A stretch of DNA of 64,000 nt. It comes from Phallusia mammillata (taxonomy: Eukaryota). Shown here in pieces: positions 8,859-43,310 of this stretch; the first letter of the stretch is position 1; every line of letters begins with the position of its first letter. The translations under genes and the position numbers were made by a program. The notes under the pieces are model-generated. The model ran no database searches and was not told where the DNA came from. It saw only the letters and a list, made by a program, of their open reading frames with translations. The stretch spans positions 1,240,001 to 1,304,000 of the forward strand of contig OZ281499.1 of assembly GCA_965637545.1 (NCBI GenBank). Reading direction: 5' to 3'.

Positions 8859-9028
8859 CACCTTATATATCCAGGCATCATCAGTTTTTTAAAAAGCAAA
8901 CAAGTAGACGGTCAAAAAATGGTTTAAAGTTTCAGTTTTTTTTACATTCTATTGTCTGCGGGAGATTTCTTACACAGCTAAATTGTTTTAGCAAAATAAA
9001 AATGGGATCAAGATCTTCAACTCTTTGT

Positions 9029-11488
9029 TTAGTGTTCACATTTGATATAATACAACAAGCCTTGTTCGTTGCAGGGTGTTGGGTAACCTTGGCCGTTTTT
9101 AATGAGATTGGCCAATGCATGTTCTTTGGAGGTGCTGCTCGATGGCAAATATTTACACGTGTGTGTTTCTCGTGTGTTGATATCTGTGCAAGTTCCGTGA
9201 TAAACCCATTTGGATTTGAAACCTCTCCATCTCCATCTGCCTTTGCTAATGCATTCGATTTCATGTGATCCGTAATAAATCTGAAAACACAAAACAAAGT
9301 AGAATTGCCTGATTATATTTGTTATTGTTTTTGTTGTCATTTGTTTTAGTAGTTCATTCTATGTTCTTAACGTTAATTTAGTATTGTAACATATCTGGCT
9401 AGATGGCCCAATAAGTAACACAATGTTTCATGAAAGACAAAAACCTAGTTTTCTGTTCAAGAATAAGATTTCTAAACTGCTATGGTCAATTTTGTTTGCA
9501 AAATTTTACCTACTTTTTCTGACAAATCAGTGTAAGTGACGAGTTTGTTCCAGTCAATAGTTCGACATTCCGGTCCTGCAGTGCAAGGTGGACATTCACA
9601 AACCGGAAGTTTATCTGACCACTGCTTCGATGCCAGACACGTCACTTTGGCAGGTCCCTAAGAAAAAGTTGAATAAATTTACTGATGTGCAAGTGGTTCT
9701 TAAAACTTCAAATCTCCTAATACGGTCTAAATATTAAATATCGAAAATAGGCAATCTAAGTTTGTTCACACAAAAGTTTTGTTAAACCTGAACCGTTGCC
9801 AAGTGATAGAGCTATTGGTTATGTGTATACGTCTTGCTGCGCAAATTCGTAAGTCCAAAACTGAACTAATACATGTAGTGAAGTAAAGCACATACTTTAA
9901 AACAAATTGAACTAAAAATGTAAGACCCAAATGGATTTAAATGATAACCCACTCTAGGACAGTGACCTAGTGATTGGGCACTTTGCTGCAATGAGTGAAA
10001 AATGTTGAAAGTTGCTGTAGGCTACAGTCGGCGAATAAGGTTGTAGTACAGAATTGTAGTTTTGGCTTCACACTTCTAAAATACACTGACCTACTGACAT
10101 ATATAGCGTTTAAATTTCACTTTTACCTGCGTAAGTTTTCCTTTGAAACAAGAAAAAGTACAGTTGGATCCGATTTTATTTTGATTTGTGCAATAAACTT
10201 CTCTATTGGGAATTTGCTTTATGGAAGCACATTCTGCAAAACAAAATTGTTTTGGTGAAACGGGTTTTGGTAAATGTTAGGCTTTTTAAATGGTAAACGC
10301 TTACCACCGGTTTCATTTTGTTTCATCCTCGTCAAAACTACTGCGAGAATTATACCAATAATTGCGACCACCACCACTGCCACTGAGCCCACAATAATAC
10401 GGCACTTTCTTTTTGCTGCTTTGGGTGACTCTGAAACACATTATAACTTTGAGACAACACTATCCGACGTATTTAAACTAAAAATTAAAAATGGCAGAAA
10501 AATATTGCAATTTTACTTTTTTATTTAATTCAGCTATTTTTTCATCTTTGCATTTATCAAGAAATGTCGGCGAGACAACGCAACATCGAGTCCGTAACGT
10601 TAAAAGTTAGTTGGTAATTATTCAGTTAACATGACAAATAACCAAAATGTGGTTTACCATGCTGAATATTGACATCTCCACCAGCGGTGTTATATGACAT
10701 GTCATTAATAATTGGATCCTTATAATTTGAAACCCATGTGGTCGATTCGTTTGCACCTGTGGACAAATTAATATTTAATTATGCAGTGATGTTTTGTTTC
10801 GTCGTTGTTTCAATATTGCAGAAATATTTTGATTAAAAATATTCAACTGGTTTGCTGTTCACCTTTTTGGGTCATTTATCAAAGCATTTTGCTGATACAA
10901 CGCAATAACAAGTTAGATATCTAACGGTTATTTCTGATTGTACATCAAAATATGTCAGATCACCAAAACATATGTTTTTGTTTACCATAATTGTTGACAT
11001 CTCCACCATTGCCGTAAACTGACGTTCTGCCCTTAAATTTTGAATGGGTTAAATTCGAAACTGCTGATGCTTTAGGCACCAATGTGGTCGGCTCACTCGA
11101 GCCTGTGAAAAAAAACTCCAATCAGAAATGTTATATTTCGGCATTGTTATAATATCGGCCTTCGATCTCGTTTCCATTTTTCGCTATCTAACACCTTCTA
11201 CCTATTTGTACTATTACCTCATCATAAGCTTGTTTGCTGTATATTGACATGCGATGTAAAGAATATGTTCACTAAGAGCCTAAAAAGGGAGCTTTAAAGC
11301 CAATATTAAAACACCGACCCTATTTTCAAACCAAGCCCAGCCAAGCAGTAGTAGCTCAGACAGTCAAGGACGTAAAGTGTAAAATATATTTAGCAAAAGA
11401 TAGCTCTACAGTAATAAGTACGACGTTAACCCAATACCTACTCGTACAATTTGAAATACTTACTCGTATTTGAAGCACCATCAGCCAT
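9029..11488 (-). CDS. Array copy 1: type II membrane protein (tail motifs x2 - TM - Sushi - Cys-rich ALF-like domain), 289 aa, intact
   Basis: Exons (minus) 11488-11464, 11102-10986, 10756-10658, 10430-10305, 10233-10127, 9657-9514, 9280-9029; all GT-AG, phases compatible, total 870 nt. Protein: MADGASNT..VYGNGGDVNNY..YNTAGGDVNIQH..KRKCRIIVGSVAVVVVAIIGIILAVVL..ECASIKQIPNREVYC..GSNCTFSCFKG..GPAKVTC..QWSDKLPVCEC..CISKGRWRWRGFKSKWVYHGTC..IKCEH*. Confidence 0.9.
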
Positions 11489-11984
11489 GATTATCAACCT
11501 GAACTAACATTGAGTTCACACTTGCATGAAACTGACAGCCTAAATTTGCACAAAGCACAGAAAAAAAGCAAAATATTGGCTCTGTTATGGGTAGTAAAAA
11601 CTAAAAACGCACAGAAAACTACTAAGTTGCACATCTGCTATATAAGACTTTTTCTTTCTCGTTTACACTCTTTGATTTCGAAAATAAAATTTCTTGTCAA
11701 AGTTTTTAACACACTAAAATCACACATCTTTGAACATTTATTTCTACCTATATTTGCCCGTTAAAGCTGGACGTAAATAAGAATTTAAATAGCATTAGGG
11801 CAGTTGATGCAAATCCTACAAAGCGAATACACTTAATAGTAAAACGTCATTTTTCTATTTCTACGTCGACTACTTGATGCATTACGGACTGCACATCATT
11901 ATCATAATCATTAGTGCTGTGGTCATAATGATTCTTGTGATGTTCGTTTATTTTAATCGGAAATGATGACGCGTCAAACACGCT

Positions 11985-12847
11985 GGTAAACGCTGCAAGC
12001 ATTGTGTTATTCCAAAACAGGTGTTCTGGTTTCCAGAAAGTGCTTCATACAATGGCATCATGATTCGCGCTGCACCAGGAAGAAATCAGTGATAAAAATT
12101 TATCATGCCAGCAAATTCTTGTAGGCCTTTAATAGTGGTGGGTTTGGGAAAACTTTGAATTGTCTTGACTTTGTCAGGTAATGGTCTTGCATCTAATCTA
12201 TCCACAAAGTGTCCTAAATAATTCGATTCCATCTGTCCGAACTTACACTTGGCTAGTAATGACAAGGTGGTGCTGGACAGGGACTTGGCCGACGGTCCGG
12301 CGCGCCTGACCCGCACACAGACATAAAAAACCTGATCGAGATTCGTTCCCGGGTGCGTCCTGGTTCGAAACTCCTAAAAAATGAAAAGTTCGTGGTGAGC
12401 CAGTTGTTTGAAAAGCTGATGAAGATGTTTGCGATGTTCTTCAGATTATTTACTTGCAACGAATATGACATCAAGATAAACGAAGACGAATTTCAAAGGT
12501 TTACACACTGTATCCATGATTATTTGAAACGCTTACCCTGCATTTTTACGTCCAAACGGCATGCGAAACTCAAAAATCCCGAACGGCGTTACGACGACGG
12601 TTTTGGAATGATTGAGGTCGATTTTAGACAAAATCTTAGCCCCTGCCAGTCGTGCTGTAAAATCCTGGATATGTGGGATCGAGTAACGGTCTGGTTGTGT
12701 TGCTGCATTAAGGCGCCTGTAATCGCCACAGGGGCGCCATCCACCTGATGTTTTGGGAACCATATGAAGTGGAGACGACCATGGACTGGATGAACGGCGG
12801 ACTATTCCCAACTCCATCATTTTAGAAGTCGTCTTTCTGTTGGACAT
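11985..12847 (-). mobile_element. Decayed Ty3/gypsy reverse transcriptase fragment (frameshifts, stop, YLDD changed to YLDV), interrupted by a short retroposon
   Basis: Translations GIVRRSSSPWSSPLHMVPK..WRPCGDYRRLN..LSKIDL..MPFG..YLDV..KCKFG..YLGH..F.GMINFY are gypsy RT motifs spread over shifting frames. Confidence 0.92.
12267..12379 (+). mobile_element. Short SINE-like retroposon inserted into the gypsy RT; second copy at about 29300-29385
   Basis: Flanked by a near-perfect 9-bp duplication, AATGACAAG (12258-12266) / AATGAAAAG (12380-12388). Shares ACAGACATAA.AAACCTGATCG.GATTCGT.CCCGGG..GTCCTGG(G)TTCGAA plus an A-rich tail with the 29300 copy. Confidence 0.6.
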
Positions 12848-13874
12848 GACTTGATTGCATTTAGGCGAGTAGCCGCTTGGTCTCTCTTACGTATGGCCAT
12901 GCTAGGTAACGACTGAGAAATAAATATCAAGAGAATATTAAGCCGGTCTGAGATTTTGTCCCTTGTGGTTCATTCTTGTTTCAAAGTCGTATGGTGAAAA
13001 AACACTGGTTTTGTTTGGCCGAAACATTTTGATCAAATACCCAGTTTCGATGATGGTTTAGGTTCATATTTCCAAAATTCGACCGAAACCAAACTTTGTG
13101 TGGGTTTGAAATCAATGCTTCACAATTAACCTTTTAAAAATTCGTAAATTGCTGCTTTTTCCAAGAACAGTGTTTCCCAAAATTTTCATCTTTGCGCCTC
13201 ATCAACCAGTTAACTTTTAGTTTAGTACACAATACACATTACAGGCAAGAAAACACAAAATAGTCTTTAGGATTCATTCCTTAGTCAAATATTTAACTTT
13301 TAGGGCAGTTCGGTGCATCGATCACTATAGGACCATACCTCCAAATAAATATGCTGTTGCTGCCTGGCATAATGTATTAACAAATATGTAGCTCCAGGAG
13401 TTTTTATTGAATTTATAAAAACTACTGGAATAGCTACATTTTTGTTAATAACTTTAAATGTTATTGTAAAACGTACCTCTAAATGTGTTTTTTTGCGTGT
13501 TTTTTTTTTGCAAAATAGACGTTACAAGAGATTATAAGTACTTGCCTCCACGGGAACGTTGATTTAAGGTGAATTTATTTTGCTTCGTCTAATTTTCAAT
13601 GCAAACCAAAAGCAGAAAATCAATCACCAAACAAGGGATAGCCGCGCAGCTATATAGGCTACAAGGCAACTGAGCGCAAGGATAAGTTGATTTAAAAAGA
13701 TTAAATTCGCTAAAGCTACAGCTACAGCTAAGTCATGCACATTTTATATCAACAATAGCACACTTTTCAACATGTGCTTTAGCATTTTAGCAATGTTTGC
13801 AACAAAAAGTGTTTATAAACAGTTCAGGAAGTATAAACAACATCAATTTTGAAACACATTCTTCAACTGTTCGT

Positions 13875-16800
13875 TCAGTTATCACATTTGATATAATACA
13901 ACATGCCCTGTTCGTTGCAAGGCGTTGGATAACCTTGGCCATTTTGAATGAGATTGGCCAACGCGCGTTTTTTTGAAGTATTGCTTCCTAGCCAGTTTTT
14001 ACACGTGTGTGTTTCTCGTGTGTTGATATCTGTACAAGTTCCTTGATAAACCCATTTGGTATGAAAACCTCTCCACTTTATCCTGCCTTTGCTGATGCAC
14101 TCGATTTCGTGCGACCCGTAATAAATCTGAAAACACAAAAAAACGACGTTTAACCATACGGTAGTGAACAAAACAATGTAGAATTGGCTTGGTATACATG
14201 TTAATGTTTTGCTTCAAATTTTTCTGATTGTCTTTGTTGAACCTTTAAGTTCACGAACCTTTTCTGGGAAATCAGTGTAAGTGACGAGTTTGTTCCAGTC
14301 AATGGTTCGACATTCCGGTCCTGCAGTGCAAGGTGGACATTCACAAACCGGAAGTGCATCCGACCACTGCTTTGATGCCAGACACGTCACTTTGGCAGGT
14401 CCCTAAGAAAAAGTTTATTAAACCAACTGATATGCAAATGCTTGTGAAAATTTTGCGACGGTCCAAAAACTAAACTATGATGGGCAAACTAAGTTTGTTC
14501 CCACAAAGTTCTACAAAACCTGAACTCTTGCCAAGTCATGAAGCTATTGGTCAAGTCTTTACGTTTTGCTGCACAAATTTGTAAGCCCAAACTTTAAACA
14601 AATATGTGCAATGAAGTAAAGCACACAATTATCAATTAGTATTGTAAACTAAAAATAAACCTAAACGGAATTAAATGATGATCAACTTTTGGCAGCGACC
14701 CAGTGGTTGAGAAGTGTTTTGAATGAAACAACGACACAACAAGCCCACAGCTACAAGACACTTCGAATGTCGGTAAAGGTTAAACTCACGCTTTTATATG
14801 GGCATGCGACAAGGTCGTCACAAGGCGGGGCAATATACTTAATGCGTCACAAGGTGGCGCAACATACATTACAAGAAGCACTTTGCTAGAGTGGGTGAAA
14901 ATGTTTCACGGTTGCCATACAGAAAATGAATAGGTTGTAGTGCAGAATAGAAGTTTTAGATTCACATATCCGACGCACACTGTGTCTCGGCAATATGTGG
15001 AAGTTTCACTTTTACCTGAATAATATGTCCTTTGTTACAAGAAAAAGTGCAAACAGACCCGACAACATTTTTATTTGTGCAGTAATCTTCTCTATTAGCA
15101 AATTGCTGTATGGAAGCACACTCTGCAAAACAAAATTGTTTGGATGAAATGAGTTAAATATAAACATCACGGCTTTTATATAATAAACGGTTACCACTAG
15201 GGATGGCCCGATAGTACTGTATCGGCGCCGATACCCGATGCTTCGAGCAGTATCGGTACTCGTCCGATACTTTAGCGGTATCGGTACAAGTACCGATACT
15301 TTTTTTGAGACTTTATCATGTGTAAAATTGAAAATGAAAGGAGGCAAAAAACAACAACCATCGGCTGTGATAAAATATTTATGGGACTACAACTAAAAAA
15401 CGCGTTCGTTTTGGATTTAATGAAATATGATGACCTAAATCGCTACAGCGACTTAATGACGTAACACGTTTTTTAGGCCCGCGTTAATTGCGAGCGAGCG
15501 TCACAACGCACAAAGTTCATTGTAGACGTTTGTAAGCATAAGTTTCGAAACGGCAGGTGTTTAATTTGTATGGCCAAGTGTATTTAGACATTCCTAGTGT
15601 TATCAGTGACAAATTATTATATGCCGTTAGGTGAACTTTTAAATCCCAATTAAACTACCTGCGATTTTGCAATACAAAAGTTGGCGTTAAGAAATGACCC
15701 AAACGTCATATGTTTTTGGATTCCTTCACTGGGGATATTAACAGACAATCCCATTCTCTGCCTAAAGCCATGATCGTTAAATGTTTTTGTTGTCAAAGTC
15801 GTAAAACATTAACGCCGGTAAGACGTTACAAACAATAGACGCCGGTAAGACGTTGCAAAGCGCGTAGCATAAACGTAATCACGTGATCAGATGCGTAACA
15901 ACTAGTGCACCAATCGTTAGTTATGCCTCCAATGCACCACCGTCGTTAGGGCATCGTTAGCTCGCCAGCTGATTTGCCAAAGAGTCTTTACCAGACCTGG
16001 GCATTTTACGGCCTTAAGTGATTTATTAGACTGAGTGTGTTGTTAAATTAACTGTGATGGGAAAACACATTACAAATACATCAGTTTGAAAATGTTTTTG
16101 CTTGTTTGCAAAGTATCGGGTATCGGTATCGGATCGCAGTACTTTTGGGGTAAAATATCGGGTATCGGTATCGGTTCAAAATATTGGTATCGGGCCAACC
16201 CTAGTTACCACCGGTTTCAGTTTGTTTCTTGGTGGTCGAAATTACTGTGGGAGTAACAGTGGCGACCACTGAATTTGTTGTCTCAACGGTGTTAGTGATA
16301 GAAGTATATTCTGCAAAACAAATTGTTTGAAGAAATAAGTTTAGGTAAATATCGAACCACACAAATGGCTCTAACGCTTACCACCAGTTTCAGTTGGTTT
16401 TCTGAGGGCCGAAACTATTGCAAGAAGTATACCAGTAAAGACAAGCACTCCCAATACCACTGCCACAACGCCCACAAAAGTACGGCGCTTTTTGTCAGCT
16501 GGGTCTGAAACGTATTATACTGTTAAGACGACACAACCCGAAATATTTCATTAAAAATGAAAAAAAGACAGAAATATGTTGCTATTTTCTCTTTCTGTTT
16601 GGTCATTTATTAAGGAATGTTACCGAGAAAATGCAACTCATATCTGAGTCAGATATGTAACGTATAAAGTTATATCAACATTATTCACCAAGAAGTGCTT
16701 TGTTGCCGTCTTCACTATTGTTGCCATCTGACGCGTCCTTCAATTGTGACTCGTTGGAATTTGGAACTACTGTTGTTTCGGGCAACAATGCGGCCGAATC

Positions 16801-17540
16801 ACTCGAGCCTGTGAAAAAATCGATTAAATTAAGCAGAAATGTTTTTCGACCTCGTTTGCAATTTATCGCTATCTGATACCTGTTGGCCATTTGTACCTTT
16901 GCCCCATTATCATCTTGCTTACTATCTATTTACATGCGGTGTAAAGAATATGTTCACTCAGAGCATAATAAGTGAACTTTAAAGTCAATATTAAAACACC
17001 GTCCCTATTTCTAAACCAAGCCAGTACCTCAGAAAGCAAAAGACTTATAGTCTGACGTCAATCTCTAAAATACATATTGGTAAAATGTTTACTTAAGTAT
17101 TGAGGATTACCATACGATGTGTTATTAACGTCTCCCGCAGCTGACGAGTGACCAGACGTAGAATCATTCACTTGTGATATGGATTCCATTTGTATCCATT
17201 CATTTTGGTCTGTCGCAAAAATTATTTAACACAAATTGAAATTAACTTTGCTGTTTTTGAATATGCGGGCCGGGTCGGGTTCTGACCTAAGTTTGATTTA
17301 AACAGACCTAATTGTTCGGGCTTGCCCCAAACTCTGCCATATTTATCACGTAATTTTGCTCATAGTTACGAGCCTATTTGGGCTTATACTCTTGGATTTG
17401 AGCTTCAATTTCAAGCCCAACTAACCACTGGTTTAATTTACTTCAAACAGTAAAACAAATATAGATTTCTTACAAAAATATTACAGTCGCAATTGCTTAC
17501 ATGATGTACTTGAAGCATTAGGACCATCATAATTAGTCAT
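13875..17540 (-). CDS. Array copy 2: type II membrane protein with an extra Thr-rich stalk exon, 328 aa, intact
   Basis: Exons (minus) 17540-17501, 17209-17111, 16808-16689, 16504-16382 (TM: RRTFVGVVAVVLGVLVFTGILLAIVSAL), 16310-16209 (stalk), 15122-15016, 14402-14259, 14126-13875; in frame, 987 nt. Loop CISKGRIKWRGFHTKWVYQGTC. Inclusion of the 17209-17111 exon is inferred from its splice sites and homology. Confidence 0.85.
15198..16203. mobile_element. Non-autonomous hAT element (1006 bp) with TAGGG termini and TATCGG subterminal repeats
   Basis: TIRs TAGGGATGGCCCGATA / TATCGGGCCAACCCTA; perfect TSD GTTACCAC at 15190-15197 and 16204-16211; clustered GTATCGG repeats at both ends. Confidence 0.93.
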
Positions 17541-18026
17541 TAGAGCCAACTTGACCTACTGTTGATTCACACCTCAATGAAACTGATTTCTTGCATTTGC
17601 CCACACGGATATAACCCAGTGAAAATACGGGAAGTAAAAATAGCGCCGAACAAAAGATCGGTGTTATTCCAACTCATAATAATTGACAAAAGTAAACACC
17701 AGAAAGGGAATTTTGGTTTTCTTTGAATAGTTTCTCTCAGTCCTTAGTGGTGCAATATGACGCACAATATTGTATTTAAATAAGAAACTGAAGCAGCCAA
17801 AACCCTTCATGGAATATATTTTCTGTGCAAATATTTGGCATCTATTTTCTACTAATATTTGCCTGTTAAGGCTCGAAACAGTTAACAATTAAAAAATAAC
17901 ATTTGCTGTTGATACAAACCCTCGAAAGTGAGAAACTTAACAGCAACCGTGCTGTCTGTTGCAGGGTGTGATATTGTTTAGTATAATCACTCTTATTAGG
18001 AAACTGCTAATTTCATGCAGATATTT

Positions 18027-18100
18027 CTACAGTTTGGTGCATTACGGACTGACGCTGAACATCATCATCATTATCATCATCATCATCACCATTGTCATTA
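18027..18100 (+). pseudogene. Relic of an SLC22 exon (acceptor plus SLVHYGLTLN) running into an (ATC)n microsatellite
   Basis: TTTCTACAG|TTTGGTGCATTACGGACTGACGCTGAAC matches the acceptor and start of SLC22 exon 3883 (SLVYYGLTLN, 9/10 aa). A more decayed copy lies at about 11870-11900. Confidence 0.65.
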
Positions 18101-18599
18101 TCGTATTAATTTGTCTACAGTCGCATCTACAATTTGACGTGCAAATAGAATAGATTGGGCGAGCAAATGTCGGATGACGTTGAAAAAGATCATAAATACT
18201 TGACTACATGAGAACGTTAATTCGATTTGAATGGATTATAATTAGTCAAATTATTGATGCAAATCAATTAGAGTAACGTCTATAACTACACGCCCGCTTA
18301 GTTCATGTCTAGCCCATCTACAACCCTTACTTAGTCCTCTTCTTAGATCCGCTTAGGACTGAATGTCGCTTCAGTGGCTGCGCAGCTATATTTTTAAATA
18401 TACAAGGCAACTAAGCGTAAAGAACAAAGGGAGGAAATAATTAAACGCACTTAAAGCGACATCGTATAAATGTCACATCAGTAGATTTTTACCAGCGATT
18501 GGGCAAAGTTTGTTTACGATTGTTTAGGGAAAACAAAATCAAAGTGGGATTCACAATCTTCAACTCTTTGTTCAGTTTCCACAACTCTTTGCCAACGCG

Positions 18600-19700
18600 T
18601 GTTTTTTGGAGGTGCTGCTCAATGACAAAAAAGAAAGAAAAAGCTGCGCAACTATATACGACGCAACCAAGTGTGTGGACGCGCGTGGTTTCCGCAATGA
18701 ATAACAAAGCCTTGGACTGACTCTTACAATGGAAATGTTCTCCTGCGTCAGCTGAGCTTTTTTAGCTATGTTATTCTTTACTCAAAAGCTTTGTGTTAAT
18801 TTTACTGCTTCTCGTGGTTCGTTTCGGTCGTCTGCAGTAGCGAGTAAAGTCCATTGTCACGATTCTTAACGCTTGATTGCTGCATAGAGCCGACATGATC
18901 CAAAAAAGAACAGTGCATTTATAGTATTTTATTCTGGTTACGCAACGCATAAAATCTCCTATATCTCAAGGAATAGAAAAAAAAACAAGATCAACGATAA
19001 AACCTTGACTTTTAAACTGATGCACTTGCGGTCGTTGGAAAAGATTGCTTTCCGTTTACTCACATCAATTATTAGTTTTTTTTAAGTTTAAAGCTGGCAA
19101 ACTACCAAGCACAAAATATCTGCCCCAGTGTATGCATCAGGAAACCGGGAACACGTAACGTTGTGGGAACACGGACACTGAATATGGACTTCCAATAGAT
19201 ACTGAATCATGAGAACACATGGAATAGTAAAGTTACACCGCTTAATATCATATGTCGCAAAAACAACATACAATTTTCATGGGAACGAAAAGTTATGCTT
19301 GCAAAGTTAAAACTTTTATTTAGTATAGGTTCAGCCACACCAATGTGCCAAAATGAAGGTTTTACCGCTACGAGCGTAAGAGCAGTGGGTGAAAACAGGA
19401 GTAAACGCGCTGAAGTTACATCGTATAAATTGGTAAATCTTTGTACAACTGGTTTAGCATATTAGCATAGCTTGTAACAAAGAGTGTTTATGAATAGTTT
19501 TAAGGAAATATCAACAAAATCAAAGTAAACATTTAGACCGTTTCATAACAAACAGGTACACAGCAACAATATTTTCTTTAAATCAACAAGAATATATATT
19601 TAGTCTTATAAACAAGCATCATCAGTTTTTGGAAAAGCAAACATTTCTGAAAAAGCAAACAAAATAAATTGCTAAAATTTTCTTTTTACATTCTATTTTC
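18600..19700. repeat. Segmental duplication of 7250-8290 (3' flank shared by array copies 1 and 3; partly also at 13500-13860)
   Basis: Long near-identical blocks, e.g. GTAAAGTCCATTGTCACGATTCTTAACGCTTGATTGCTGCATAGAGCCGACATGATCCAAAAAAGAAC at about 7546 and 18843. Confidence 0.9.
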
Positions 19701-19761
19701 TGCGGGAGATTCCTTACATGACTAAATTGTTTCAGCAAAATGAAAACAGTAAACTCTTTGT

Positions 19762-21550
19762 TCAGTTTTCGCATTTGATATAATACAACAAGCCTTGTTC
19801 GTTGCAAGCTGTTGGGTAACCTTGGCCATTTTTGATGAGATTGGCCAACGCGTGTTTTTTGGAAGAACTGCTTGATGGTAAATATTTACACGTGTGTGTG
19901 TCTCGTGTGTTGATGTCAGTGCAAGTTCCATGGTAAACCCATTTGAAACCACGTACCCTTCCTTTGCTGGTGCAATCTATTTCGTGTGCTCCGTAATAAA
20001 TCTAAAAAATGAAAAACAATGTGTACGTTTGGTTTTGTTAGTGTTTATTTTGTCATGGAATGTAGGACCTGAAAATTATGATACCACTGTATTAAGGTGG
20101 CCTAATAAGTAATAAAACCAACATTTCTGAGTTGTTGTGGTTGATTTCGTTTAAATAATTTCCCCTACCGTTTCAGACCTATCAGTGTAAGTGACAAGTT
20201 TGTTCCAGTCAATGGTTCGACATTCCGGTCCCGCAGTGAAAGGTGGACATTCACAAACCGGAAGTACATCCAACCACTGCTTCGATGCAAGACACGTCAC
20301 TTTGACAGGTCCCTATGGAGTCAAACAAGTTTGTGAGACATTTGAAGTGACCAGAGCTGCGATTCTCAACCTTTTACGATCAAACCTGACGCATGCAAAT
20401 TCTGATGAGCCTCCAACGTGGAAGTTTAGTTTCAGTTGCACCTGCGCAAGATTTCCTTTGATGCAGGAAAAAGTGCAATTAGACCCGACGACATTTTTAT
20501 TTCTGCAATAAACTTCTCTGTCTGGCATCTCTTGTATGGAAGCACATTCTACAAATTATGAAAATAGTTTTGGGTACATATCAAAGCATTTTAGATGATA
20601 AACACTTACCACGGTTTCAGTTTGTTTTCTGGTAGTCAAAATGACTGTTGGAGTAACGATAACGACCACTACGATTAAGCCAAGAATAATGAAGAGCTTT
20701 TTGTGAGCTGGCTTGCATGTCCCGGGAACGTATAAAGTTCAATATTATATCAGACATATAACGATTTAAATTCCTTTGACAACCAAACACCACATTTTGC
20801 AAATGCATATGGACATCCGAATCTTTTTTGTTCAATATCATAACACACACATGATGCTTTAAACTCCTTTGATAACACCACATTTAACAACGCGTATATT
20901 GTCAATCCTAACCAGGGTAAGTGTTATTGACGTCTCCCGCTGCGTTGTAAACTGACGAGTTTTCAAACCTTGATTCACTGAAGCTTACTTGTACTCCACT
21001 TTTGGAAAAAATCATTCAATTAGATGATACAAATCAGTGTTCTAGCTGTTTTTACGATATTGTTCATCAATGACAATTGGATAAAGTGGCAATGCAAATA
21101 TAATTTTGACTTGATTTGACTTGACAAATAAAGCGAAAACACTTATGAGAACATGATATGCCATTATCCTGACGAAGGCGTTTCACATGGGGAATCGAAA
21201 CGTCGGTTGTTTATAACAAACAAAAATCTCCCGAAAGAGCAATGTTATACTTTACAAACAGCTTCTTTATTTAAAAACAACTTAAAACCAAGGATTTCAA
21301 CTTAGAGTTAGAATAAAACTGTCTTGATTCCTCAAGCTTGACTTCGTAATCGGGCATATTTGTGATGTAATTTCGCTCAGTTTCAAACCTGATTCGGCCT
21401 TATACTCTTTCGTGTTCGAGCTCCAATTTAAGTCCCCGCTAACAACTGGTTCAATCGACTTCGATGAGTAAATAAGAAATTAATTTGTCACAGAATTACT
21501 GCAGTTCCACTTCCTTACTTGTATATAGAAGCAATATGATCTTCTGTCAT
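19762..21550 (-). pseudogene. Array copy 3: all exons open except the TM exon (acceptor AG changed to CG, plus a 1-nt deletion); pseudogene or TM-skipped isoform
   Basis: Exons (minus) 21550-21519, 20998-20913, [20722-20610 broken TM exon, 113 nt vs 114 nt in copy 4], 20548-20442, 20312-20169, 20001-19762. Shortened loop CTSKGRVRGFKWVYHGTC; one Cys changed to Phe in CPPFTAGPEC. Confidence 0.8.
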
Positions 21551-22749
21551 GTTAATCGACTTGGACTAACTCACGCTTGCATAAGCTGATTTCTTGCAAT
21601 GGTTTACACAACAATATACCTGTAAAAACGAGGGAAGTGAAAATGGTGACAATATAAAAACTTGGACAAAGGGCAAATGTAATTTCAACTTGCAATAAAT
21701 GACAAGAGTAAATATCAGATTTAAATATCAGCGGTTTAGTTGAAAAGTTCCCCCTTGTTTAGTGACGTAACTTAACGCACAACGTTAACTTTGTGTTGGC
21801 TGAAACTTTTTATGTCACTAGAGGCGGCATTGAGGTCAAATATTAAAGAGGGCATTGCCTTAACCCACATAAACTTTTTATTTGTCCTAAATACAAACAT
21901 GTTGTGAAAGCTAATCCAATATTGAGTAAGAAAATTTGGAACAGTAATTAAGTTCACGGAATAAGGTTTCGTCCGTCTTGTGGTTCCGTTTTTTGATGGC
22001 TTCAATTCCCACGAGGGACTTGAGTTTCGGGTGAAAACCCTTATGATGTCATAATAGAGCACGACACGCTTCACGCATTCTTTGTCCACGTATTTTCGCG
22101 ATCGCGCACCTTTGGCTCCCCTTTTACTTTGCTCTTTTTTTAGATCTTTCTTTTTTGATCCTTTTCATCAACGTATTACCGTTTCTGCCCTTAAGGTTTC
22201 GTGAAACAGCGTAACCATCTAATGAACTCATAGGATTTGTTTAGTTGTAAGCATAGGTTTAAGGTTTTGCTTTTTTGCTTTAAGTGTATTCGCTTTGTAG
22301 GGTTTGTATCAATTGCAAATCTGTTTTTAAATTGTTAACTTTGTCGAGCTTTAACTAGCCAATACATGTAGACATGAATGTTTCAAAATTTAGTGCATTG
22401 GAAAATCGAAAAGAAATTGTATTCTTGTAATCTAAACCAAAGAAGGAAAGCGTAAACGAAATTTTAAGAACTTCTAACACAGCAGATGTATATCTCAGCT
22501 TGTTGTTGAACCATTGCGTTGCACCACCGCTCAGTAACTTGAGACGAAATCCTTTTGTGCGAAACCTGCTGACGGACATGATTCAACAAAATTTACCTTT
22601 CGAGTGTGCTCGGTGTGTTACGGACAACACCTACCCGTTTTACAAGCGTTTTTTTGCTTAAAACGGATCATATTTTTCAGCTTTTCTGCTTTGCTTTAGC
22701 TGACAGTTTAGTGCAGGTGTGGAATAAATGTTAGTTTAGGTTGATAATC

Positions 22750-25618
22750 ATGGCTGATGGTGTTCCAAATACAAGTAAGTAATTAAGCTCAGACATGTAA
22801 GCTACTGCTTGGTTGGGTATAGTTCAGTGGTTCTCAACCTTTTATGCACCGTTGCCCCCTAAAAAAAATTTCGGGCCTCGTGGCCCATGATCTATCTGGA
22901 CACTTTTATGCCAAAAATATACATTAAAATGGACAAATAGTGTGAAAAATATTCGGTTAAATAAGGAAATTGAATCATTTGTAACACACACTTAACATTG
23001 AGCAATATGAAAGAAAATGTTTCACTGACGTTTGGTGGATGTTTCTAGTGAGCCTACACCCTTGGCGCCCCAGAATACAGCTTATGCCCCACCCCACCCC
23101 CCTAGGGTGCCATGGGCTCTGGTTGGATACCACTGCTCTGGTTTGTAAATGTGGACGGCGTTTTAACATTGGCTTTAAAGCTCCCTCATTATAATGCTCT
23201 ATAGAGTCTGAGTAAACGTAGCCTTTACATCGCGTGTGAATACAGTACATAGTCGGCAAAGTAACAGTACTAATATACAGAAGGTGTTAGATAGTGACAA
23301 AGATAAAGATACAATGACGAAATAAAACTTAACTGCTTAATTTCATCAATTTTTTCACAGGCTCAAATGAGTCAACCAGATTGCTGCCAAAAACACCAGC
23401 CAATTCAAAATTTAAGGGCAGAACGTCAGTTTACGGCAATGGTGGAGATGTCAACATTCATGGTAAACAAAACATATGTTGTGGTGATCTGATATATTTT
23501 GATAAACAATTACAAAAAAACTTTAACTTTAAACCTACATGTCAGACTTGACATATATTGATGTTACTTTGACTCAGCGAAATGTTTTGATGAATGATTA
23601 AAAAATATCAACAATATGAAAAAATGAAAATTTTAAATTTAAACGTCTGTCTTATGTTTGTTTTTTTATCAAACATGTCGAATTGTATTGTCTCAACGTA
23701 AAAATGCAATATTTGTATCTTATTAAACTGACCCAAATTTCTTTTTTCCGCGACAGACCGGACCTCACTGCCACCAAATGTAGGATTAACTTTCAACGGT
23801 ACAAATAATGATGGCGCGTGGTTCAACGCCGCTGGAAGAGATCTCAATATTGGTAAATTTCAAACAAATGTTTTGATAAGTTGACAGTAAACAGGTTGAC
23901 AACAATATGATGTGTATTGGGTTATATATTACGTGTAAAATTATTGTATTCCTGTCAACATGTTAAACAAAATATGTCTCTACGTAACTTTATGTTTCAG
24001 AGACATGCAAGCCAGCTCACAAAAAGCTCTTAGTTATTCTTGGCTTAATCGTAGTGGTGGTTATTGTTACTCCAACAGTTATTTTGACCACCAGGAAACC
24101 AACTGAAACCGGTGGTAAGTGTTAACCAAATCTATTTTTTATCTAAATCTATTTTACCCAAATAATTTTGTTTTGCAGAATGTGCTTCTATAAAGCAGAT
24201 TCCAAATAGAGATGTTTACTGCACAAATAAAAACGTCGTCGGGTCCGTTTGCACTTTTTCTTGCATTAAAGGAAATCTTACTAAGGTGAAACTAAATATC
24301 TGTGCGTACAAAGTGTGTAATACTTTGTTGCGTAGAACTGAACACTCCAATGATCTTTATGGATCTGTCAGCCAGACTGGTGCATTTATAAATCTTAAAA
24401 CAGATTATTTATGTTAAAAAATATGGCATGCGATATGCAATGGCTCGTAAAATGCAAAGATTTGCTCAACAAAGTTTGTTTCGTTGTCTATGACAATTTT
24501 TTCTGTCCGATTTGGGGGTCCATGTCGATGGCAACCCTGATAATAACTCAAACAAGTTAGATGACCAACTGGTTGACATGTGCAAACTTCAAGGCAGGCA
24601 AAGGTGCTTGTGATTCGACTTTCGACGATCAGCCAGTGCATAGATTATGTGGTAGGAAGCGAGTCTCGGAAAAGTTTCTGTCATGGGTTCGAGTCCCACT
24701 GCAGACCAGATTTTTTTTACTTATATACCTTACTAAATGGGAATGCTTGGTTTCCAGATAAATCTTTTTTACGCCTTCATTGGGCCTGGTTTACTGTGGT
24801 TTAAACATGTTCGTTTCCAAAGGGACCTGCCAAAGTGACGTGTTTAGCATCGAAGCAGTGGTCGGATAAACTTCCGGTTTGTGAATGTCCACCGTGCACT
24901 GCAGGACCGGAATGTCGAACCATTGACTGGAACAAACTCGTTACTTACACTGATTTATCAGAAAAAGTGGGTAAAAAAAGCCAATGGTCAAAACATTTTT
25001 TTCGCCATACCGAACAATTGTTATAGGTATAGAATATGTTAGAGTTATAAGCAGTGGTGGGATTCAGCCGGTTCGCACCGGTGCTATAGAACCTTCTCAC
25101 GAAATTTTATGAGATCAGCGAACCGGTTAGCATTACTGGTTACTATCAACTGACTTTTTGTAACAGAACCGGCTGGCAAATACGACTTTTGTGATAGAAC
25201 CGGCTGACAAAAAATTTGAATTTCACCACTGGAGTTAAGTAAAAAAAATCTCTGAAAGATTCCGTTACTGCTGGGTTAATGTTACTGTTTTTTTTTGTGT
25301 TTTTGATGACAAAACAACACCAATAAAGTTATTTAGTCAGTTCTACATATTGTTTTCCGTTTCCAGATTTATTACGGATCACACGAAATCGAATGCATCA
25401 GCAATGGCAGGTGGAGATGGAGAGGTTTCAAATCAGAATGGGTTTACGATGGAACTTGTACAGACATTAATACACGAGAGACACAACTCTGCAAGGATTT
25501 GGAGTCTGGTGACGGTGCAAAGCAACACGCGTTGGCCAATCTCATTAAAAAGGGCAAAGGTTACCCAACACCCTGTGGCAAAGAAAACTGGCTAGGAAAT
25601 TTGAGTTGTGATCAATGA
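22750..25618 (+). CDS. Array copy 4: type II membrane protein, 279 aa, intact
   Basis: Exons 22750-22774, 23361-23462, 23757-23852, 24001-24114, 24179-24285, 24823-24966, 25367-25618; 840 nt in frame. Protein: MADGVPNTSSNESTRLL..VYGNGGDVNIH..WFNAAGRDLNI..KKLLVILGLIVVVVIVTPTVIL..Sushi..CISNGRWRWRGFKSEWVYDGTC..LSCDQ*. Confidence 0.92.
22825..23135. mobile_element. Old or composite hAT-type MITE in intron 1 of copy 4
   Basis: CAGTGGTTCTCAACC start and GGTTGGATACCACTG end; no clean TSD. Confidence 0.45.
24570..24730 (+). mobile_element. Degenerate copy of the tRNA-containing repeat (same family as 63016-63615)
   Basis: TGACATGTGCA...GTGATTCGACTTTCGACG...GGGTTCGAGTCCCACTGCAG..AGATTTTTTT matches the reverse complement of about 63440-63580; a more decayed copy lies at about 4430-4515. 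Confidence 0.75.
25052..25231. mobile_element. hAT MITE (CAGTGGTGGGATTC family), inverted relative to the 6565 copy
   Basis: TIRs CAGTGGTGGGATTC / GAATTTCACCACTG; body matches the 6565-6744 copy. Confidence 0.85.
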
Positions 25619-25687
25619 ACTAAGATTAGATGACTCCTTAACAGACTTGTCATAAAGTTTATAGAGCTCTTCTGGCAAATGTATTTT

Positions 25688-25725
25688 TATTCCGACGTTT
25701 CGACGTCCTGTCTTCATCAGGGTAA
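25688..25725 (-). ncRNA. Minimal hammerhead-ribozyme motif (Penelope-like fragment) just 3' of copy 4
   Basis: Minus strand reads CC-CTGATGA-A-GAC-AGGAC-GTC-GAAAC-GTC-GG; stem I is only about 2-3 bp. Confidence 0.55.
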
Positions 25726-26848
25726 ATAACACTGAATGGGACGAGTACAGTGCACGATAAACAAAGGAAAAAAGAATATAAACGTCACAACGCAACGGAA
25801 ACACCGCGCGATAACGAATGATTGGGCCTCTAGTCTTTGCGCAGGTGCCTGTTATAAGCTTGTGGGTTTCCTGTGAACAAAACGGGAACACTTAGAACAC
25901 CTTAATTTCTGCTCGATCAATGTATAAAAATCTGTGAGTAACATTGTCAGGGTTCCCCCCAAAAAATTGTGCTTCTATCTTCTATCATAAACGGTCTCAA
26001 AAACTCAATATATTTTTCAACTCTACAAGAGCAATTAGAAAAAAATGATTTAAAACAAACCGCTAAAGCGCAGCAAAGAGCTTTACTGACATGAAGGGTG
26101 GGTTATGTGCAATTTGTGTTGATTTCATTACTTTCAGTTTTTCTTGTTTGTGTTGTCGGTTCGATTCTGGAATAAACATACTTTTTAAATAAAATTAAAA
26201 AATCATTCTGGGAAATTCTGGCAAACGGAATATTTTAATTTAATTTCGATTATTTGGTCGTCCAATAGTTGCCACAAACGGCACCCGAGAGTCAAAATGA
26301 TCCTTCTTTTACGTGAAGTGGTTGAGTAAACTGAAGGCAAACAGTTGTGAGAGTTTTTCAATGAACAAAGTGTGAGAGATTTGCTTTTGCGTTTATTTAG
26401 TATGTGGAATAATACTTAGCACAAGAGTTACCAACCAATGTCCAAGTTGGTCATGGTTTAAGAGTTAAATAAAGTAAGGGTTAAATATGTTTCAAGTTAA
26501 AAATGGATTTGTGTGTCAAAAATACTTTAGATTAACAAGGCTAATTTCTTATCTTACAAATACATCCATTGAATTACGCGGGAGTTGCTAACCTCCGATT
26601 TAACAGATATAATATTCAGTTTAAAGTTATGTGAAATCCGTGTCGCTATTTCCTCTTCAGTAATATACTGGAAAAAGAATCTTTTCTAAGAAACCAACGC
26701 AACTCGGACAAGGATATTCGCTTTTAAGTTTCTTGTGTTATTTACAAGTGACACTTCTGTTTTGTTTATGTTTTTTTAGTTTCTTCCAACTTAACATGGT
26801 TTTCTGAGAAAATCTGTTGCATGAAGTGTTGAACTAAAGTTGGTTAGC

Positions 26849-28893
26849 ATGACTGATGGTGCAATTAATGCAGGTAGGCGCGTTAAGTTGTTTGAGTTAT
26901 TTAAACAAACAAAGTCAACTTTGCTAACAAGCCGAACTTTGTCCTTGTTCTCAATAACCTTGTTGAATCAACTGTGTACTCTCGAAGTTTTAAATTTGTT
27001 TCGCAAACATGCAAAAGACCAAAAAAATCTGAGTCTGTAGTTGTGTGTAAAACATACGTTTCGACAAGTGCTATTGTCATCATCAGGTCATTTTATCTCC
27101 GTTTAATTGCTTTTACCTTTTACTTCGTCTTGACCTTTTTTATCGTTGTGCGGCACCCAGTAGCATGCCTTCTGTTGACTTTAATTCTAAAAACCTGTTG
27201 ATGACAATAGCATTTGTCAAAACGCAGTATTGTTTTATACGCAAATACTGGCTTTAATTTTTTTGCTCAGATTATTTAAAAGTTTGAATAGTGTACCTTA
27301 TATTAGAAAATATACGAAAATCACAAGACAGTGGAAGATCAAAATAAAAATTTGCAGTAGCTAACATGATATAAAACAACTGTTTGTTTTGGTGGATGTT
27401 AAAGTATTTGTTTAGTGTTGAAATCGTGCATGCAAGTGTTTAAAGAGCCTCATGCAGCTAATGAAACACAAACTGACAACCGCTAAATTACATCAAGAGA
27501 GAGTATAGTTGGTATTGAATGATTGATTGACTAGGAGTTTTTTTTTGCGACAGAACCGGACGAGACGACTCCATTGCAAGCAAGTTTCAACAAATCGGAA
27601 ATTAAAGACAGTTTATTTCACTTTGCTGGAAGAGACATCAATATTGGTAAACCACACAGCATTTTGCTAAGTTGACATGTTTTGTTAAACAATTACAATG
27701 TATGCATTTCAAAGAATTTCTGTCACAATGCTTAAGTAAGCACTTAAGTAAGTACGTCGTGTTGCCTCAAATTAAGTAATTTTACGTCTTAGGACCATGC
27801 AAGCCAGTTCACCAAAAGCTCTTTATTACTCTGGGCATACTGGCAGTGGTCGCCATCGTTACTCCAACAGTAATTTTGACCACCAAGAAACAAACTCCCC
27901 CCGTTGGTAAGGCTTTGTCGTTACATGGTTTCATGTTAAACCCGTTATAACAATTTTGTTTCGCAGAATGTGCGTCCATAAAGCAGATTCCGAATAGAGA
28001 GGTTTATTGCACAAATAAAAATGTCGTCGGATCAATTTGCACTTTTTCTTGCAATACGGGAAATCTTACAAATGTAAGACATATGGCATATAAAAGTACA
28101 TTTCGACTTTGTGTTCTTTTTGGGGCCTGCCCAAATAACCCTGACTCAACCACATCAAATGTCTCACAAGCTTGTTTGATTTCCATAGGGACCTGCCAAA
28201 GTGACGTGTCTGGCATCGAAGCAGTGGTCGGATAAACTTCCGGTTTGTGAATGTCCACCTTGCACTGCAGGACCAGAATGTCGAACCATTGACTGGAAAA
28301 AACTCGTCACTTATACCGATAAATCCGAAACGGTTGGAGAAATTGTTTAATTAAGATGTATTGAGTCGTTCTACTGAGACACCTAGTTTAACGTTACTTG
28401 TGTATTTTAAAACCAAAGTAGTTCCATCAGAAAACATGGGTAGATGAAAAATACCTTGGACACGTCCAAGAAATATCAACATTACCTTGGAAGTAAAATA
28501 AATGGGCTTACATTTTTCTTGTTAGTATTTGGAACATTGAAACAAATTTTTACCGGCTTTGTGTTATGAGCCGTTTGCCTAAAGACAAATCAATCCCTCA
28601 TATTTTATTTTATAATTTAATAAACTATTTTGTCCTGTCAGATTTATTACGCTTCACACGAAATAGAATGCAACAGTGAACCCAGGGTAAAATGGAAAGG
28701 TGTCAAGACTGAATGGGTTTACGATGGAACTTGTACGGATGTGAACACACGAGAAACACAACTATGCAAAGGTTTGAATTCAAGTGGAGGTTCAAAAGAA
28801 CACGCGTTGGCCAATCTCATTAAAAAGGGAAAAGATTACCCAACGCCATGTAACGAACAAAACTGGAAGGAAGATTTGGATTGCGATGAATGA
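26849..28893 (+). CDS. Array copy 5: type II membrane protein, 244 aa, intact, one tail motif
   Basis: Exons 26849-26873, 27554-27646, 27793-27906, 27967-28073, 28189-28332, 28642-28893; 735 nt in frame. Protein: MTDGAINA..FHFAGRDINI..KLFITLGILAVVAIVTPTVIL..Sushi..CNSEPRVKWKGVKTEWVYDGTC..LDCDE*. Confidence 0.92.
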
Positions 28894-42592: not shown

Positions 42593-42775
42593 CAGTGGTG
42601 GGATTCAAATTTTTGTCAGCCGGTCGTATCACAAAAGTCAAATTTTTCAGTCGGTTTTGTTACAAAAAGTCCATTGACAGTAACCAGTAATGCTAACCGG
42701 TTCGCTGATCTCTTCTCTTAAATTTTGTGAGACGGTTCTATAGAACCGGTGCAAACCGGCTGAATCCCACCACTG
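42593..42775. mobile_element. hAT MITE (CAGTGGTGGGATTC family)
   Basis: TIRs CAGTGGTGGGATTC / GAATCCCACCACTG; body nearly identical to the 6565 copy. Confidence 0.9.
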
Positions 42776-43004
42776 CCTAAGAGTATTCTTGGCGGTGACT
42801 GGCTGCTTGCGAGGAATTTCACGCCTTGGTGCGAAAGCTGAATATTAGTTGATTCATCGTAATTATTGCACATACCAAAAGTGCATCTGGGTTTGCTGGT
42901 GTCAAAGTCCGAAGAAGGAGTCGTTACTGTCATAGTTTACATCAAAAAACTTAACTAAAGTTTTGCAACCATGTTTTAATAGCTACAGCTTCAATGGTTT
43001 GAAC

Positions 43005-43249: not shown

Positions 43250-43310
43250 ATTTAAACAGATTAAATGACATTTGTTTTTAAAATAATAAGTTCGATTGTT
43301 TTATTTGCAG

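Follow-up and report, generated by a model that had tools for sequence, protein, structure and literature searches.

The window analysed here is a 64,000-nt stretch of the Phallusia mammillata genome, and between positions 9029 and 28893 it holds five paralogous genes, three on the minus strand (g1, g2 and g3) and two on the plus strand (g4 and g5; Table 1). Together they form a tandem array, inverted in part, in which four genes are intact and one, g3, is a pseudogene. A tblastn search of the whole window with the terminal exon of g1 recovered exactly five copies (E 1e-69 to 1e-35) and nothing further at E<3, and self-blastn found the Sushi, TM and tail exon blocks in the same order in every copy. 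Gene models were built by hand from the sequence; in those of the four intact genes all intron junctions are canonical GT-AG and intron phases are conserved. The shared plan runs, 5' to 3', from a 25-40 nt micro-exon with the ATG, whose end is in phase 1, through tail exons (phase 1-1), a TM exon (1-1), Sushi exon A (1-0) and Sushi exon B (0-0), to a terminal exon whose 84 codons include the stop. The sequence-only reading of this locus had described five paralogues on one exon plan, four of them fully open, and tblastn, self-blastn and the spliced models agree with it; the ATG exon of g5, which that reading implied, is now placed.

Table 1. Features of the array, in window positions; exons are listed 5' to 3'.
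Feature	Position	Strand	Description
g1	9029..11488	-	intact, 289 aa; AG/GT junctions, open frame
g1 exons 1-4	11488-11464, 11102-10986, 10756-10658, 10430-10305	-	MADGASNT; tail a; tail b; TM
g1 exons 5-7	10233-10127, 9657-9514, 9280-9029	-	Sushi A; Sushi B + CPPC linker; ALF-like terminal
g1 C-x20-C hairpin	9188..9253	-	C-ISKGRWRWRGFKSKWVYHGT-C; 6 K/R, 0 D/E, 5 aromatics
g2	13875..17540	-	intact, 328 aa
g2 exons 1-4	17540-17501, 17209-17111, 16808-16689, 16504-16382	-	MTNYDGPNASSTS; tail, AAGDVNNTSYG; tail, degenerate motif; TM
g2 exons 5-8	16310-16209, 15122-15016, 14402-14259, 14126-13875	-	first is the extra Thr/Val-rich stalk
g3	19765..21550	-	pseudogene
g3 exons	21550-21519, ~20990-20916, from ~20721, from 20548, from 20312, 20001-19765	-	ATG-like; tail; TM; Sushi A; Sushi B; terminal
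g4	22750..25618	+	intact, 270 aa
g4 exons	22750-22774, 23361-23462, 23784-23852, 24001-24114, 24179-24285, 24823-24966, 25367-25618	+	second is tail a; third is tail b, ...AAGRDLNI-G; fourth is TM
g5	26849..28893	+	intact, 244 aa
g5 exons	26849-26873, 27554-27646, 27793-27906, 27967-28073, 28189-28332, 28642-28893	+	first is MTDGAINA; second is tail, ...FAGRDINI-G; third is TM
Terminal-exon copies (tblastn)	9032-9340, 13878-14213, 19765-20019	-
Terminal-exon copies (tblastn)	25343-25615, 28585-28890	+
g5 tail motif	27614..27646	+	F-H-F-A-G-R-D-I-N-I-(G), end of phase 1-1 exon
Sister tail motifs	23820-23852, 23427-23462, 10986-11021, 10658-10694, 17111-17146		g4b; g4a; g1a; g1b; g2a
Upstream block of g1	11671-11844	-	resembles the two blocks below
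Upstream block of g4	22273-22435
Upstream block of g2	17848-17946

Each intact gene has an ATG-to-stop open frame that encodes, in order, a low-complexity, N/S/G-rich cytoplasmic tail of 48-94 aa, one TM segment, a six-Cys Sushi-like module, a CxxC linker and the terminal domain, and 14 of 14 ectodomain Cys are kept across all four copies. The TM segment has basic residues on its N-terminal flank, no signal peptide or hydrophobic N-terminus was found upstream of it in the translated models, and there is neither a Met in the TM exon nor an upstream start besides the ATG exon. The intact copies are, as predicted from these features, single-pass type II membrane proteins, the topology already proposed from the sequence. 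Variation between copies in tail-motif number, stalk length and loop charge, also reported before, was recovered throughout: the tails carry two motifs in g1 and g4, one in g5 and one (plus a degenerate one) in g2; g2 alone has the additional stalk exon, of 34 aa; and the net charge of the terminal-domain loop is +6, +5, +2 and +1 in g1, g2, g4 and g5. In the pseudogene the TM exon has lost its acceptor AG and, ahead of the donor, 1 nt at its 3' end; the ATG-like exon, at 32 nt, is out of phase, the linker CPPC has become CPPF, and two 2-codon deletions have shortened the hairpin from C-x20-C to C-x16-C.

Two Sushi exons had been noted, and both are present, but their signatures indicate one Sushi-like module per protein, divided over the two exons, and not two Sushi domains. 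A Sushi/CCP domain is expected to span about 60 aa, to have four consensus Cys and a conserved Trp, and to match the family profile. Exon A alone aligns to positions 1-32 of the Pfam Sushi profile (PF00084; E=0.022, 15.6 bits against a cutoff of 20.7), and the sole PDB matches to an exon-A profile are complement-control proteins (E 0.1-0.2). Exon B bears TC..S.QW....P.C, which is the C..W....P.C signature, and the module has six Cys, two beyond the Sushi/CCP consensus.

There is real support, from sequence profiles and predicted structure, for reading the terminal domain as a divergent anti-LPS-factor (ALF)/scygonadin domain (PF11630), homologous to that family or sharing its fold, an assignment newly made here. 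Searched alone, the terminal exons of g1, g4 and g5 match no Pfam family at E<=1, so PF11630 is not reached directly and the link is a transitive one; the array domain differs from arthropod ALFs in this and in its extra Cys (eight in linker plus domain). A terminal-exon profile matches P0003, P0007 and P0008 at E 1e-5 to 8e-4 (against 1.84e9 proteins), two of which, P0003 and P0008, exceed the PF11630 gathering score (30.7 and 43.8 bits vs 25), and hhalign of the terminal-exon profile with ALF-like repeats of PF11630-positive proteins gave 96.3% and 96.2%. The helix after the sheet carries ...EHA[LV]xxLI..., which is common to PF11630-positive proteins. Most of the protist ALF-like bridge proteins fall below PF11630 themselves, a word-indexed search with the ALF-like profile returned unnamed metagenome proteins only (0 of 19 reach PF11630 alone), and PDB sequence searches with the terminal-exon and ALF-like repeat profiles returned no ALF.

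An AF2 model restricted to the terminal exon (the N-terminal ALF helix sits in the preceding exon) has a pLDDT of 87.8 and the topology b-b-b-b-a-a, with the four-stranded sheet packed on helices that defines the ALF fold. Its best shape match in the ESM Atlas is an all-arthropod cluster, 41% of whose members carry PF11630 (TM 0.65, rmsd 2.1 A over 63 residues), and in a VIA search 70 residues align to the shrimp ALF 2JOB with a Z of 5.8. That structure comes 17th in the VIA ranking, in the company of dsRBD/S5-type folds with similar Z; a dsRBD/ribosomal S5-like reading (Z up to 6.4 in VIA) was discarded, as the domain is predicted to be extracellular and is disulfide-rich, and the sequence links point to ALF. 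Foldseek gave no significant match in the PDB and Swiss-Prot (AFDB) and, among AFDB clusters, only the small unnamed proteins A0A8B6H3J5, A0A1X7V7N4 and A0A814J5V7; an ESM-Atlas feature search with the domain was uninformative (scores of 0.6). Structural support from the model is accordingly good and not unanimous. Many small proteins without a name, as well as multi-repeat membrane proteins of protists, also show an ALF-like fold.

In ALFs the LPS-binding domain takes the form of a 22-residue loop, which two conserved Cys close off and which is amphipathic, with hydrophobic and basic residues (PMC6499195). The array hairpin has the same spacing, with C-x20-C in four of four intact copies and an equivalent loop in all five, and in the AF2 model its two Cys face each other within the strand pair E7-20/E23-34. 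Arg, Lys and Trp abound in the hairpins of g1 and g2; those of g4 and g5 are near neutral, and the terminal domains of these two copies are acidic (pI 6.1 and 5.2). Arthropod ALFs (PF11630; ALF-Pm3, 2JOB) and the array domain share, then, a predicted four-stranded sheet followed by helices, a 22-residue basic/aromatic disulfide hairpin and the EHA[LV]xxLI helix, but ALFs are secreted proteins of ~100 aa with a signal peptide, whereas the array domain is the C-terminal ectodomain, behind Sushi, of type II proteins of 244-328 aa. As full-length proteins the array members belong to no named family, since no hit below 1e-10 came out of an exhaustive HMMER search over 1.84 billion representatives; the earlier view of an architecture built from different parts, outside any named family, stands at full length and gives way at the C-terminal part, which appears to be a very divergent member of the named ALF/scygonadin family. 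The guess that the ectodomain is of a microbial-ligand type is supported insofar as profiles, hhalign, AF2 and 2JOB point to an arthropod ALF homolog or fold.

Each phase 1-1 tail exon bears a conserved motif at its 3' end, with the consensus ...[YF]-x-x-[AG]-G-[DR]-[VD]-[NLI]-N-I/N-(x)-G and the variants ...AGRD[LI]NIG and ...GGDVNI/N..G. A six-frame translation of the window has just two instances of its strict form, G-x(1,2)-[IVL]-[NQ]-[IVL]-G, and each lies in an array tail. The motif is preserved across exon duplication while its flanks diverge; the g1a and g4a motif regions share 51 identical nt, and because there are no synonymous differences among them, this identity may reflect gene conversion instead of selection on the protein. 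The RHIM/cRHIM core has been described as (I/V/L)-x-(I/V)-G (PMC13506858; PMC10268257). INIG in g5 and LNIG in g4b fit this tetrad, a four-residue pattern being weak evidence, and the g1, g2 and g4a tails have VNI or VNN with the Gly shifted by 1-2 residues. Pfam returned no match, RHIM included, for the seven tail exons at E<=10, and PDB searches returned no RHIM chain. What had been called a cRHIM-like motif is reduced by these searches to a resemblance by pattern only.

We hypothesize that the array encodes type II surface sensors for LPS-like ligands with a Sushi plus ALF ectodomain, a reading to which we give about even weight, its ligand binding and signalling steps being conjectural. 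The ALF hairpin at the cell surface would bind lipid A/LPS or some other anionic polymer of microbial surfaces, and paralogues with differing loop charge and stalk length could serve different ligands. The allorecognition role that had also been suggested found no support in these results. Ligand-driven clustering would then gather the tails, whose motif would recruit a cytosolic adaptor. That recruitment might proceed through RHIM/cRHIM-like templated (amyloid) assembly, a tentative and somewhat doubtful addition; if so, the array would follow the logic of Drosophila PGRP-LC and shrimp SRB2.

Several known systems bear comparison. Horseshoe-crab Factor C, an LPS-recognising protein, resembles the array in its Sushi/CCP modules, and differs in being a secreted or granule serine-protease zymogen with neither an ALF domain nor a comparable TM anchor. 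PGRP-LC, of the IMD pathway, has a cRHIM-type tail motif and an ectodomain that binds a bacterial wall component (PMC4262963; PMC13506858). Like the array proteins it is a single-pass type II receptor with an N-terminal cytoplasmic tail motif (cRHIM-like by pattern only in the array) and a C-terminal ectodomain, and several alternative ectodomains are available in both, the fly making them by splicing and the array having them as paralogues; however, no PGRP (amidase_2) domain was found in the array exons and there is no sequence relation, so that the likeness is one of logic only. Shrimp SRB2 is a membrane receptor reported to sense LPS, whose cRHIM tetrad ARNG forms amyloid with IMD (PMC10268257), but it is a two-pass CD36-family protein with a C-terminal tail motif and an ectodomain unrelated to that of the array. 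Amphioxus and other invertebrate RHIM proteins have one to three RHIM-like motifs and disordered linkers replacing death-fold domains, and tunicates seemed to lack RHIMs (Kajava et al. 2014, PMC4262963). With its short motifs of RHIM-like pattern the array recalls these immune-type architectures, but none of those described combines Sushi with an ALF ectodomain, and the array motif misses the RHIM profile.

It is tempting to go further and see here a non-arthropod animal's own endotoxin receptor, an ALF domain on a type II stalk with exon-modular RHIM-like motifs, working within an amyloid-based innate network in a lineage thought RHIM-less and so reinventing the logic of PGRP-LC and SRB2-IMD; we regard this as unlikely. 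ALFs are textbook arthropod antimicrobial peptides, and an ALF domain serving as the ectodomain of a membrane family in an apparently different animal lineage would, if true, widen the known range of the fold and be a case of an effector domain turned sensor. Should the tail motif be of cRHIM type, the array would join PGRP-LC and SRB2 as a third independent case of a bacterial sensor at the cell surface that is coupled to amyloid-type signalling, and its four paralogues, each carrying one motif exon or two, would offer a compact test case for motif evolution by exon duplication.

The array proteins could instead be membrane-tethered effectors, either pro-forms or displayed ALF-like antimicrobial or opsonic domains, acting at the surface or shed at the stalk, with the tail for sorting only. 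Characterised ALFs are all effectors and none is a receptor (PMC6499195), the g1 and g2 hairpins resemble bactericidal peptides in being strongly cationic and Trp-rich, and in every copy a basic pair (RK, KK or MK) comes after the TM segment; yet no furin-type site was seen, a shed effector would need no conserved, exon-duplicated cytoplasmic motif, and the near-neutral loops and acidic domains of g4 and g5 fit direct killing poorly, so that we think this rather unlikely. Distinctly improbable, in our estimation, is a non-immune surface family (for adhesion, gamete or self/non-self recognition, or as a developmental ligand receptor) that reuses the ALF-like fold as a protein-binding module. 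Sushi modules are common among adhesion and recognition proteins, loop charge and stalk length vary among copies, and the wider occurrence of the fold noted above would suit such reuse. However, it is specifically through the amphipathic, cationic C-x20-C hairpin that ALFs bind lipid A (PMC6499195), and between copies the three ectodomain exons have dN/dS values of 0.00-0.54 (dS 0.13-1.0), below 1 throughout, and the terminal exon gives no hint of diversifying selection; values this low indicate purifying selection on these exons.

Transcripts bear on the remaining alternative. In four same-species RNA runs (source tissues not given) the word share for positions 9000-17600 is 0.09-0.10, but the check for transcription proposed earlier gave no transcript over g1 or the 3' part of g2: the contigs leave g1, and likewise the Sushi B and terminal exons of g2, without coverage, data of this kind showing presence and never absence, and a run search found no run with g4 or g5. 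The word share must then fall in 14800-17600; short repeat-like RNA matches start at 14714. That the array is silent or decaying, its frames open and its genes unexpressed or pseudogenising like g3, would agree with this lack of coverage and with one of five copies being dead already, but it is very improbable given such presence-only data and four copies that keep splice sites, all 14 Cys and an open frame despite dS up to 1.0 at low dN/dS. Were the genes silent, or the ectodomain without a microbial ligand, the array would be a lineage-specific Sushi-ALF-fold family with no role assigned.

The sensor reading aside, the exon organisation has counterparts elsewhere: Sushi A, Sushi B with a CPxC linker, and terminal exons with identical boundaries occur on L001 and L002, unrelated metagenome contigs of eukaryote-like character, and L002 also has a TM-like exon. 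Within the window, a block upstream of g1 resembles blocks upstream of g4 and g2 at 72-78% identity, and this conserved sequence could be a promoter or a non-coding first exon.

A tblastn search with the 84-codon terminal exon of g1 found five matches in the window and nothing else notable, and in a self-blastn comparison of 8000-30000 conserved blocks precede each copy in one and the same order. Gene models were read in three frames around each conserved block and then assembled by script; every junction is AG...GT, and phases are identical in all copies. The plan comprises an ATG micro-exon ending in phase 1 (MADGASNT, MTNYDGPNASSTS, MADGVPNT, MTDGAINA), one or two tail exons (phase 1-1), a TM exon (1-1), Sushi exon A (1-0), Sushi exon B (0-0) and a terminal exon of 83 codons plus stop, while g2 has one additional exon, also phase 1-1, for a Thr/Val-rich stalk of 34 residues. 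The spliced models and both searches confirm the five paralogues with a shared exon plan, four of them open, described in the sequence-only reading. The pseudogene g3 has lost its TM-exon acceptor and one base ahead of the TM donor, carries an ATG-like exon of 32 nt that is consequently out of phase, reads CPPF in place of CPPC, and has two 2-codon deletions in the hairpin.

Features of the array and its surroundings, in window coordinates, with tail motifs
Feature	Position	Strand	State	Tail motif
g1	9029-11488	minus	open, 289 residues	g1a SVYGNGGDVNNY-G; g1b SYNTAGGDVNIQH-E
g2	13875-17540	minus	open, 328 residues	g2a SSAAGDVNNTSY-G
g3	19765-21550	minus	pseudogene	
g4	22750-25618	plus	open, 270 residues	g4a SVYGNGGDVNIH-G; g4b WFNAAGRDLNI-E
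g5	26849-28893	plus	open, 244 residues	FHFAGRDINI-G
Duplicated g1 3' flank	7357-8303; 18631-19601			
Inverted repeat	8297-8429; 8684-8816			
Dispersed repeat	25034-25231; 6565-6744; 42593-42779; 58686-58825			
Second repeat	24574-24809; 63002-63584			
Reverse-transcriptase fragment	12086-12847	minus		
CUB exon	43265-43597	plus		
Tail-like open stretch	52545-52660	minus	38 codons	

About 950 bp of the g1 3' flank recurs downstream of g3 at 81% identity, so this flank was part of the unit duplicated to make g3. Just downstream of g1 lies a 133-bp inverted repeat, its arms 98.5% identical and 254 bp apart, that resembles a MITE or hairpin element. Another repeat is dispersed, measures about 190 bp (87-89% identity) and is probably SINE-like, with one of its copies inside the last g4 intron; the second repeat in the table is found twice. 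Between g1 and g2 lies a fragment of a reverse transcriptase (Pfam RVT_1, E 6e-4) from a decayed retroelement. Downstream of the array, one exon encodes a signal peptide and, after it, a CUB domain (Pfam CUB, E 1.3e-12); it belongs to an unrelated secreted-protein gene.

The N-terminus of the proteins is hydrophilic, the TM exon lacks Met, and basic residues (KAAKRKCR, DKKRR, KPAHKK, KPVHQK) stand ahead of the hydrophobic segment, with the disulfide-rich part after it. A single TM segment, no signal peptide and a Cys-rich part outside leave type II (N-in/C-out) as the sole possible arrangement, and this is the topology predicted for the proteins.

A1, a profile built from the five terminal exons, was compared with 1.84 billion cluster representatives and matched only eight proteins at E ≤ 0.001 and none at 1e-10; this library therefore contains no annotated full-length relative, which bears out the earlier failure to recognise the architecture as a named family. 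Of the eight, P0005 is the terminal exon of a gene on L002 and P0006 that of a gene on L001, both eukaryote-like metagenome contigs. Another three (P0001, P0002 and P0004) are long and contain multiple repeats; among them are a mollusc C163B-like protein and one built mostly of fibronectin type III repeats. The remaining three (P0003, P0007 and P0008) repeat the form ...GR.IH.K..GY.KG.KWRYKATATD.ATGI......KSG.GAVEHAV..LI..LIEKGIIP, and P0003 (30.7 bits) and P0008 (43.8 bits) both pass the gathering score of 25 for PF11630 (anti-LPS factor/scygonadin, ALF). In profile-profile comparison A1 matched repeats of this type at 96.3% (E 1.9e-9) and a wider set of 19 relatives at 96.2%, the multiple alignment spanning the whole domain from IYYG.HEI to G.YP. 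P0008 itself, a 600-aa protein from a JGI metagenome, combines a signal-anchor at its N-terminus with five ALF-like repeats in tandem, so proteins of the ALF fold that are anchored in membranes occur outside animals too. Together with its relatives P0011-P0031 it forms an unnamed ALF-like domain family, apparently of microbial eukaryotes, most single-domain members of which fall below the PF11630 cutoff.

AlphaFold2 with the multiple alignment modelled the terminal exon at pLDDT 87.8 and pTM 0.76, in the order strand, long hairpin, strand, helix, helix. In this model Cys11 is opposite Cys32 in the hairpin, as follows from the strand limits (E7-20 and E23-34). The LPS-binding domain of ALFs is defined as a 22-residue loop with two Cys closing it, and nothing but these Cys and the hydrophobic/hydrophilic pattern is conserved there (PMC6499195); the loop of the terminal domain has exactly this length (in g1, C-ISKGRWRWRGFKSKWVYHGT-C). 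Loop charges across the paralogues are +6, +5, +2 and +1, and domain pI ranges from 8.8 to 5.2. Structure searches with the model had a mixed outcome. Foldseek returned nothing significant from the PDB and Swiss-Prot models. A Foldseek-independent VIA search aligned the shrimp ALF structure 2JOB over 70 residues (Z 5.8), at rank 17 among dsRBD/S5-type folds with Z up to 6.4, the alignment being among the longest listed. The top ESM-Atlas shape match (TM 0.65 by query, 2.1 A over 63 residues) is an all-arthropod cluster, 41% of whose members carry PF11630, and matches among AFDB clusters are small unnamed proteins at 21-28% identity. Profile-profile comparison, VIA and ESM-Atlas point to ALF, but the terminal exons do not themselves match the PF11630 profile. 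On balance we consider it likely that this is a divergent ALF-type domain.

Two Sushi exons are present, as had been read, but they encode one Sushi-like module split across both. Exon A alone matches the first half of the Pfam Sushi model (E=0.022), a profile of six exon-A sequences matched only complement-control proteins in the PDB, and weakly, and exon B contributes the C...W....P.C end. The ectodomain module has six Cys rather than four and is probably Sushi-like.

The tail exons end in a motif at the 3' splice site, lost from one g2 exon, that is kept while the flanks diverge with indels. Between g1a and g4a, 51 nt are identical with zero synonymous changes, which resembles gene conversion more than it measures selection. 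The RHIM/cRHIM core is (I/V/L)-x-(I/V)-G, as in IQIG, VQVG, VxxG, VHIG and LHFG (PMC13506858; PMC10268257), and invertebrate RHIM proteins have 1-3 motifs separated by disordered linkers (PMC4262963), an arrangement that the tails resemble. INIG and LNIG fit this core, a four-residue pattern being weak evidence, but no Pfam family (RHIM included) and no PDB RHIM chain matched any tail. Translated in six frames, the whole window contains the strict pattern G-x(1,2)-[IVL]-[NQ]-[IVL]-G only twice, each time in the tail exons. An amyloid reading of the motif seems to us possible but rather doubtful. Elsewhere, an open stretch reading ...IGYKLGDVNNQSNIGQYNNAPGYQQ... has GDVNN (expected count in the window ~0.05), 15 nt identical to a g1 tail exon, and the RHIM-like NIG.YNN; it lacks usable splice sites, and neither Sushi nor TM exons adjoin it, so that this stretch may be a tail-exon relic or a chance match.

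The architecture of tail, TM, Sushi-like module and ALF-type domain is shown at the level of the gene models. Each part is known, but not this combination; in the literature, searches pairing ALF with transmembrane, Sushi or membrane-bound receptors brought up nothing similar. The array proteins would be a variant of those bacterial sensors that sit at the cell surface and carry a short assembly motif in the cytoplasm. Drosophila PGRP-LC (type II, N-terminal cRHIM, C-terminal ligand domain) and the shrimp LPS sensor SRB2, which has a cRHIM, follow the same logic. The parallel with PGRP-LC drawn previously stands for the architecture (type II, N-terminal tail motif, C-terminal ectodomain), but the array ectodomain is unrelated to that of PGRP-LC, or of SRB2. 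We hypothesize that at the cell surface the ALF hairpin would bind lipid A/LPS or a comparable anionic polymer of microbial origin, paralogues differing in loop charge and domain pI covering different ligands, and that receptor clustering would concentrate the tail motifs, which could then recruit a cytosolic partner. Alternatively, the products may be tethered or shed antimicrobial effectors, or constitute a non-immune recognition family.

The array might also be silent. No RNA run contained at least 1/20 of the words of 22200-28900, and four runs contained 9-10% of those of 9000-17600. On 8800-14799 the contigs of these four runs match only short repeat-like pieces (8800-8845 and 14714-14799), leaving g1 and the two 3' exons of g2 with zero coverage, in a kind of data where contigs show presence rather than absence. 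Their 9-10% share for 9000-17600 must lie in 14800-17600. From 14714-14799 rightwards, RNA contigs match the short repeat-like piece in a g2 intron and then continue into unlike sequence. In the terminal and both Sushi exons, pairwise dN/dS (NG86) is 0.00-0.54 at dS 0.13-1.0, and 14 ectodomain cysteines are kept in all four intact copies. Homologous exons with identical boundaries occur on the two metagenome contigs, which come from other sources: L001 carries Sushi A, Sushi B with CPxC, and the terminal exon, and L002 a TM-like exon, a CPPC exon and the terminal exon. Low dN/dS, kept cysteines and these homologous exons speak for functional genes.
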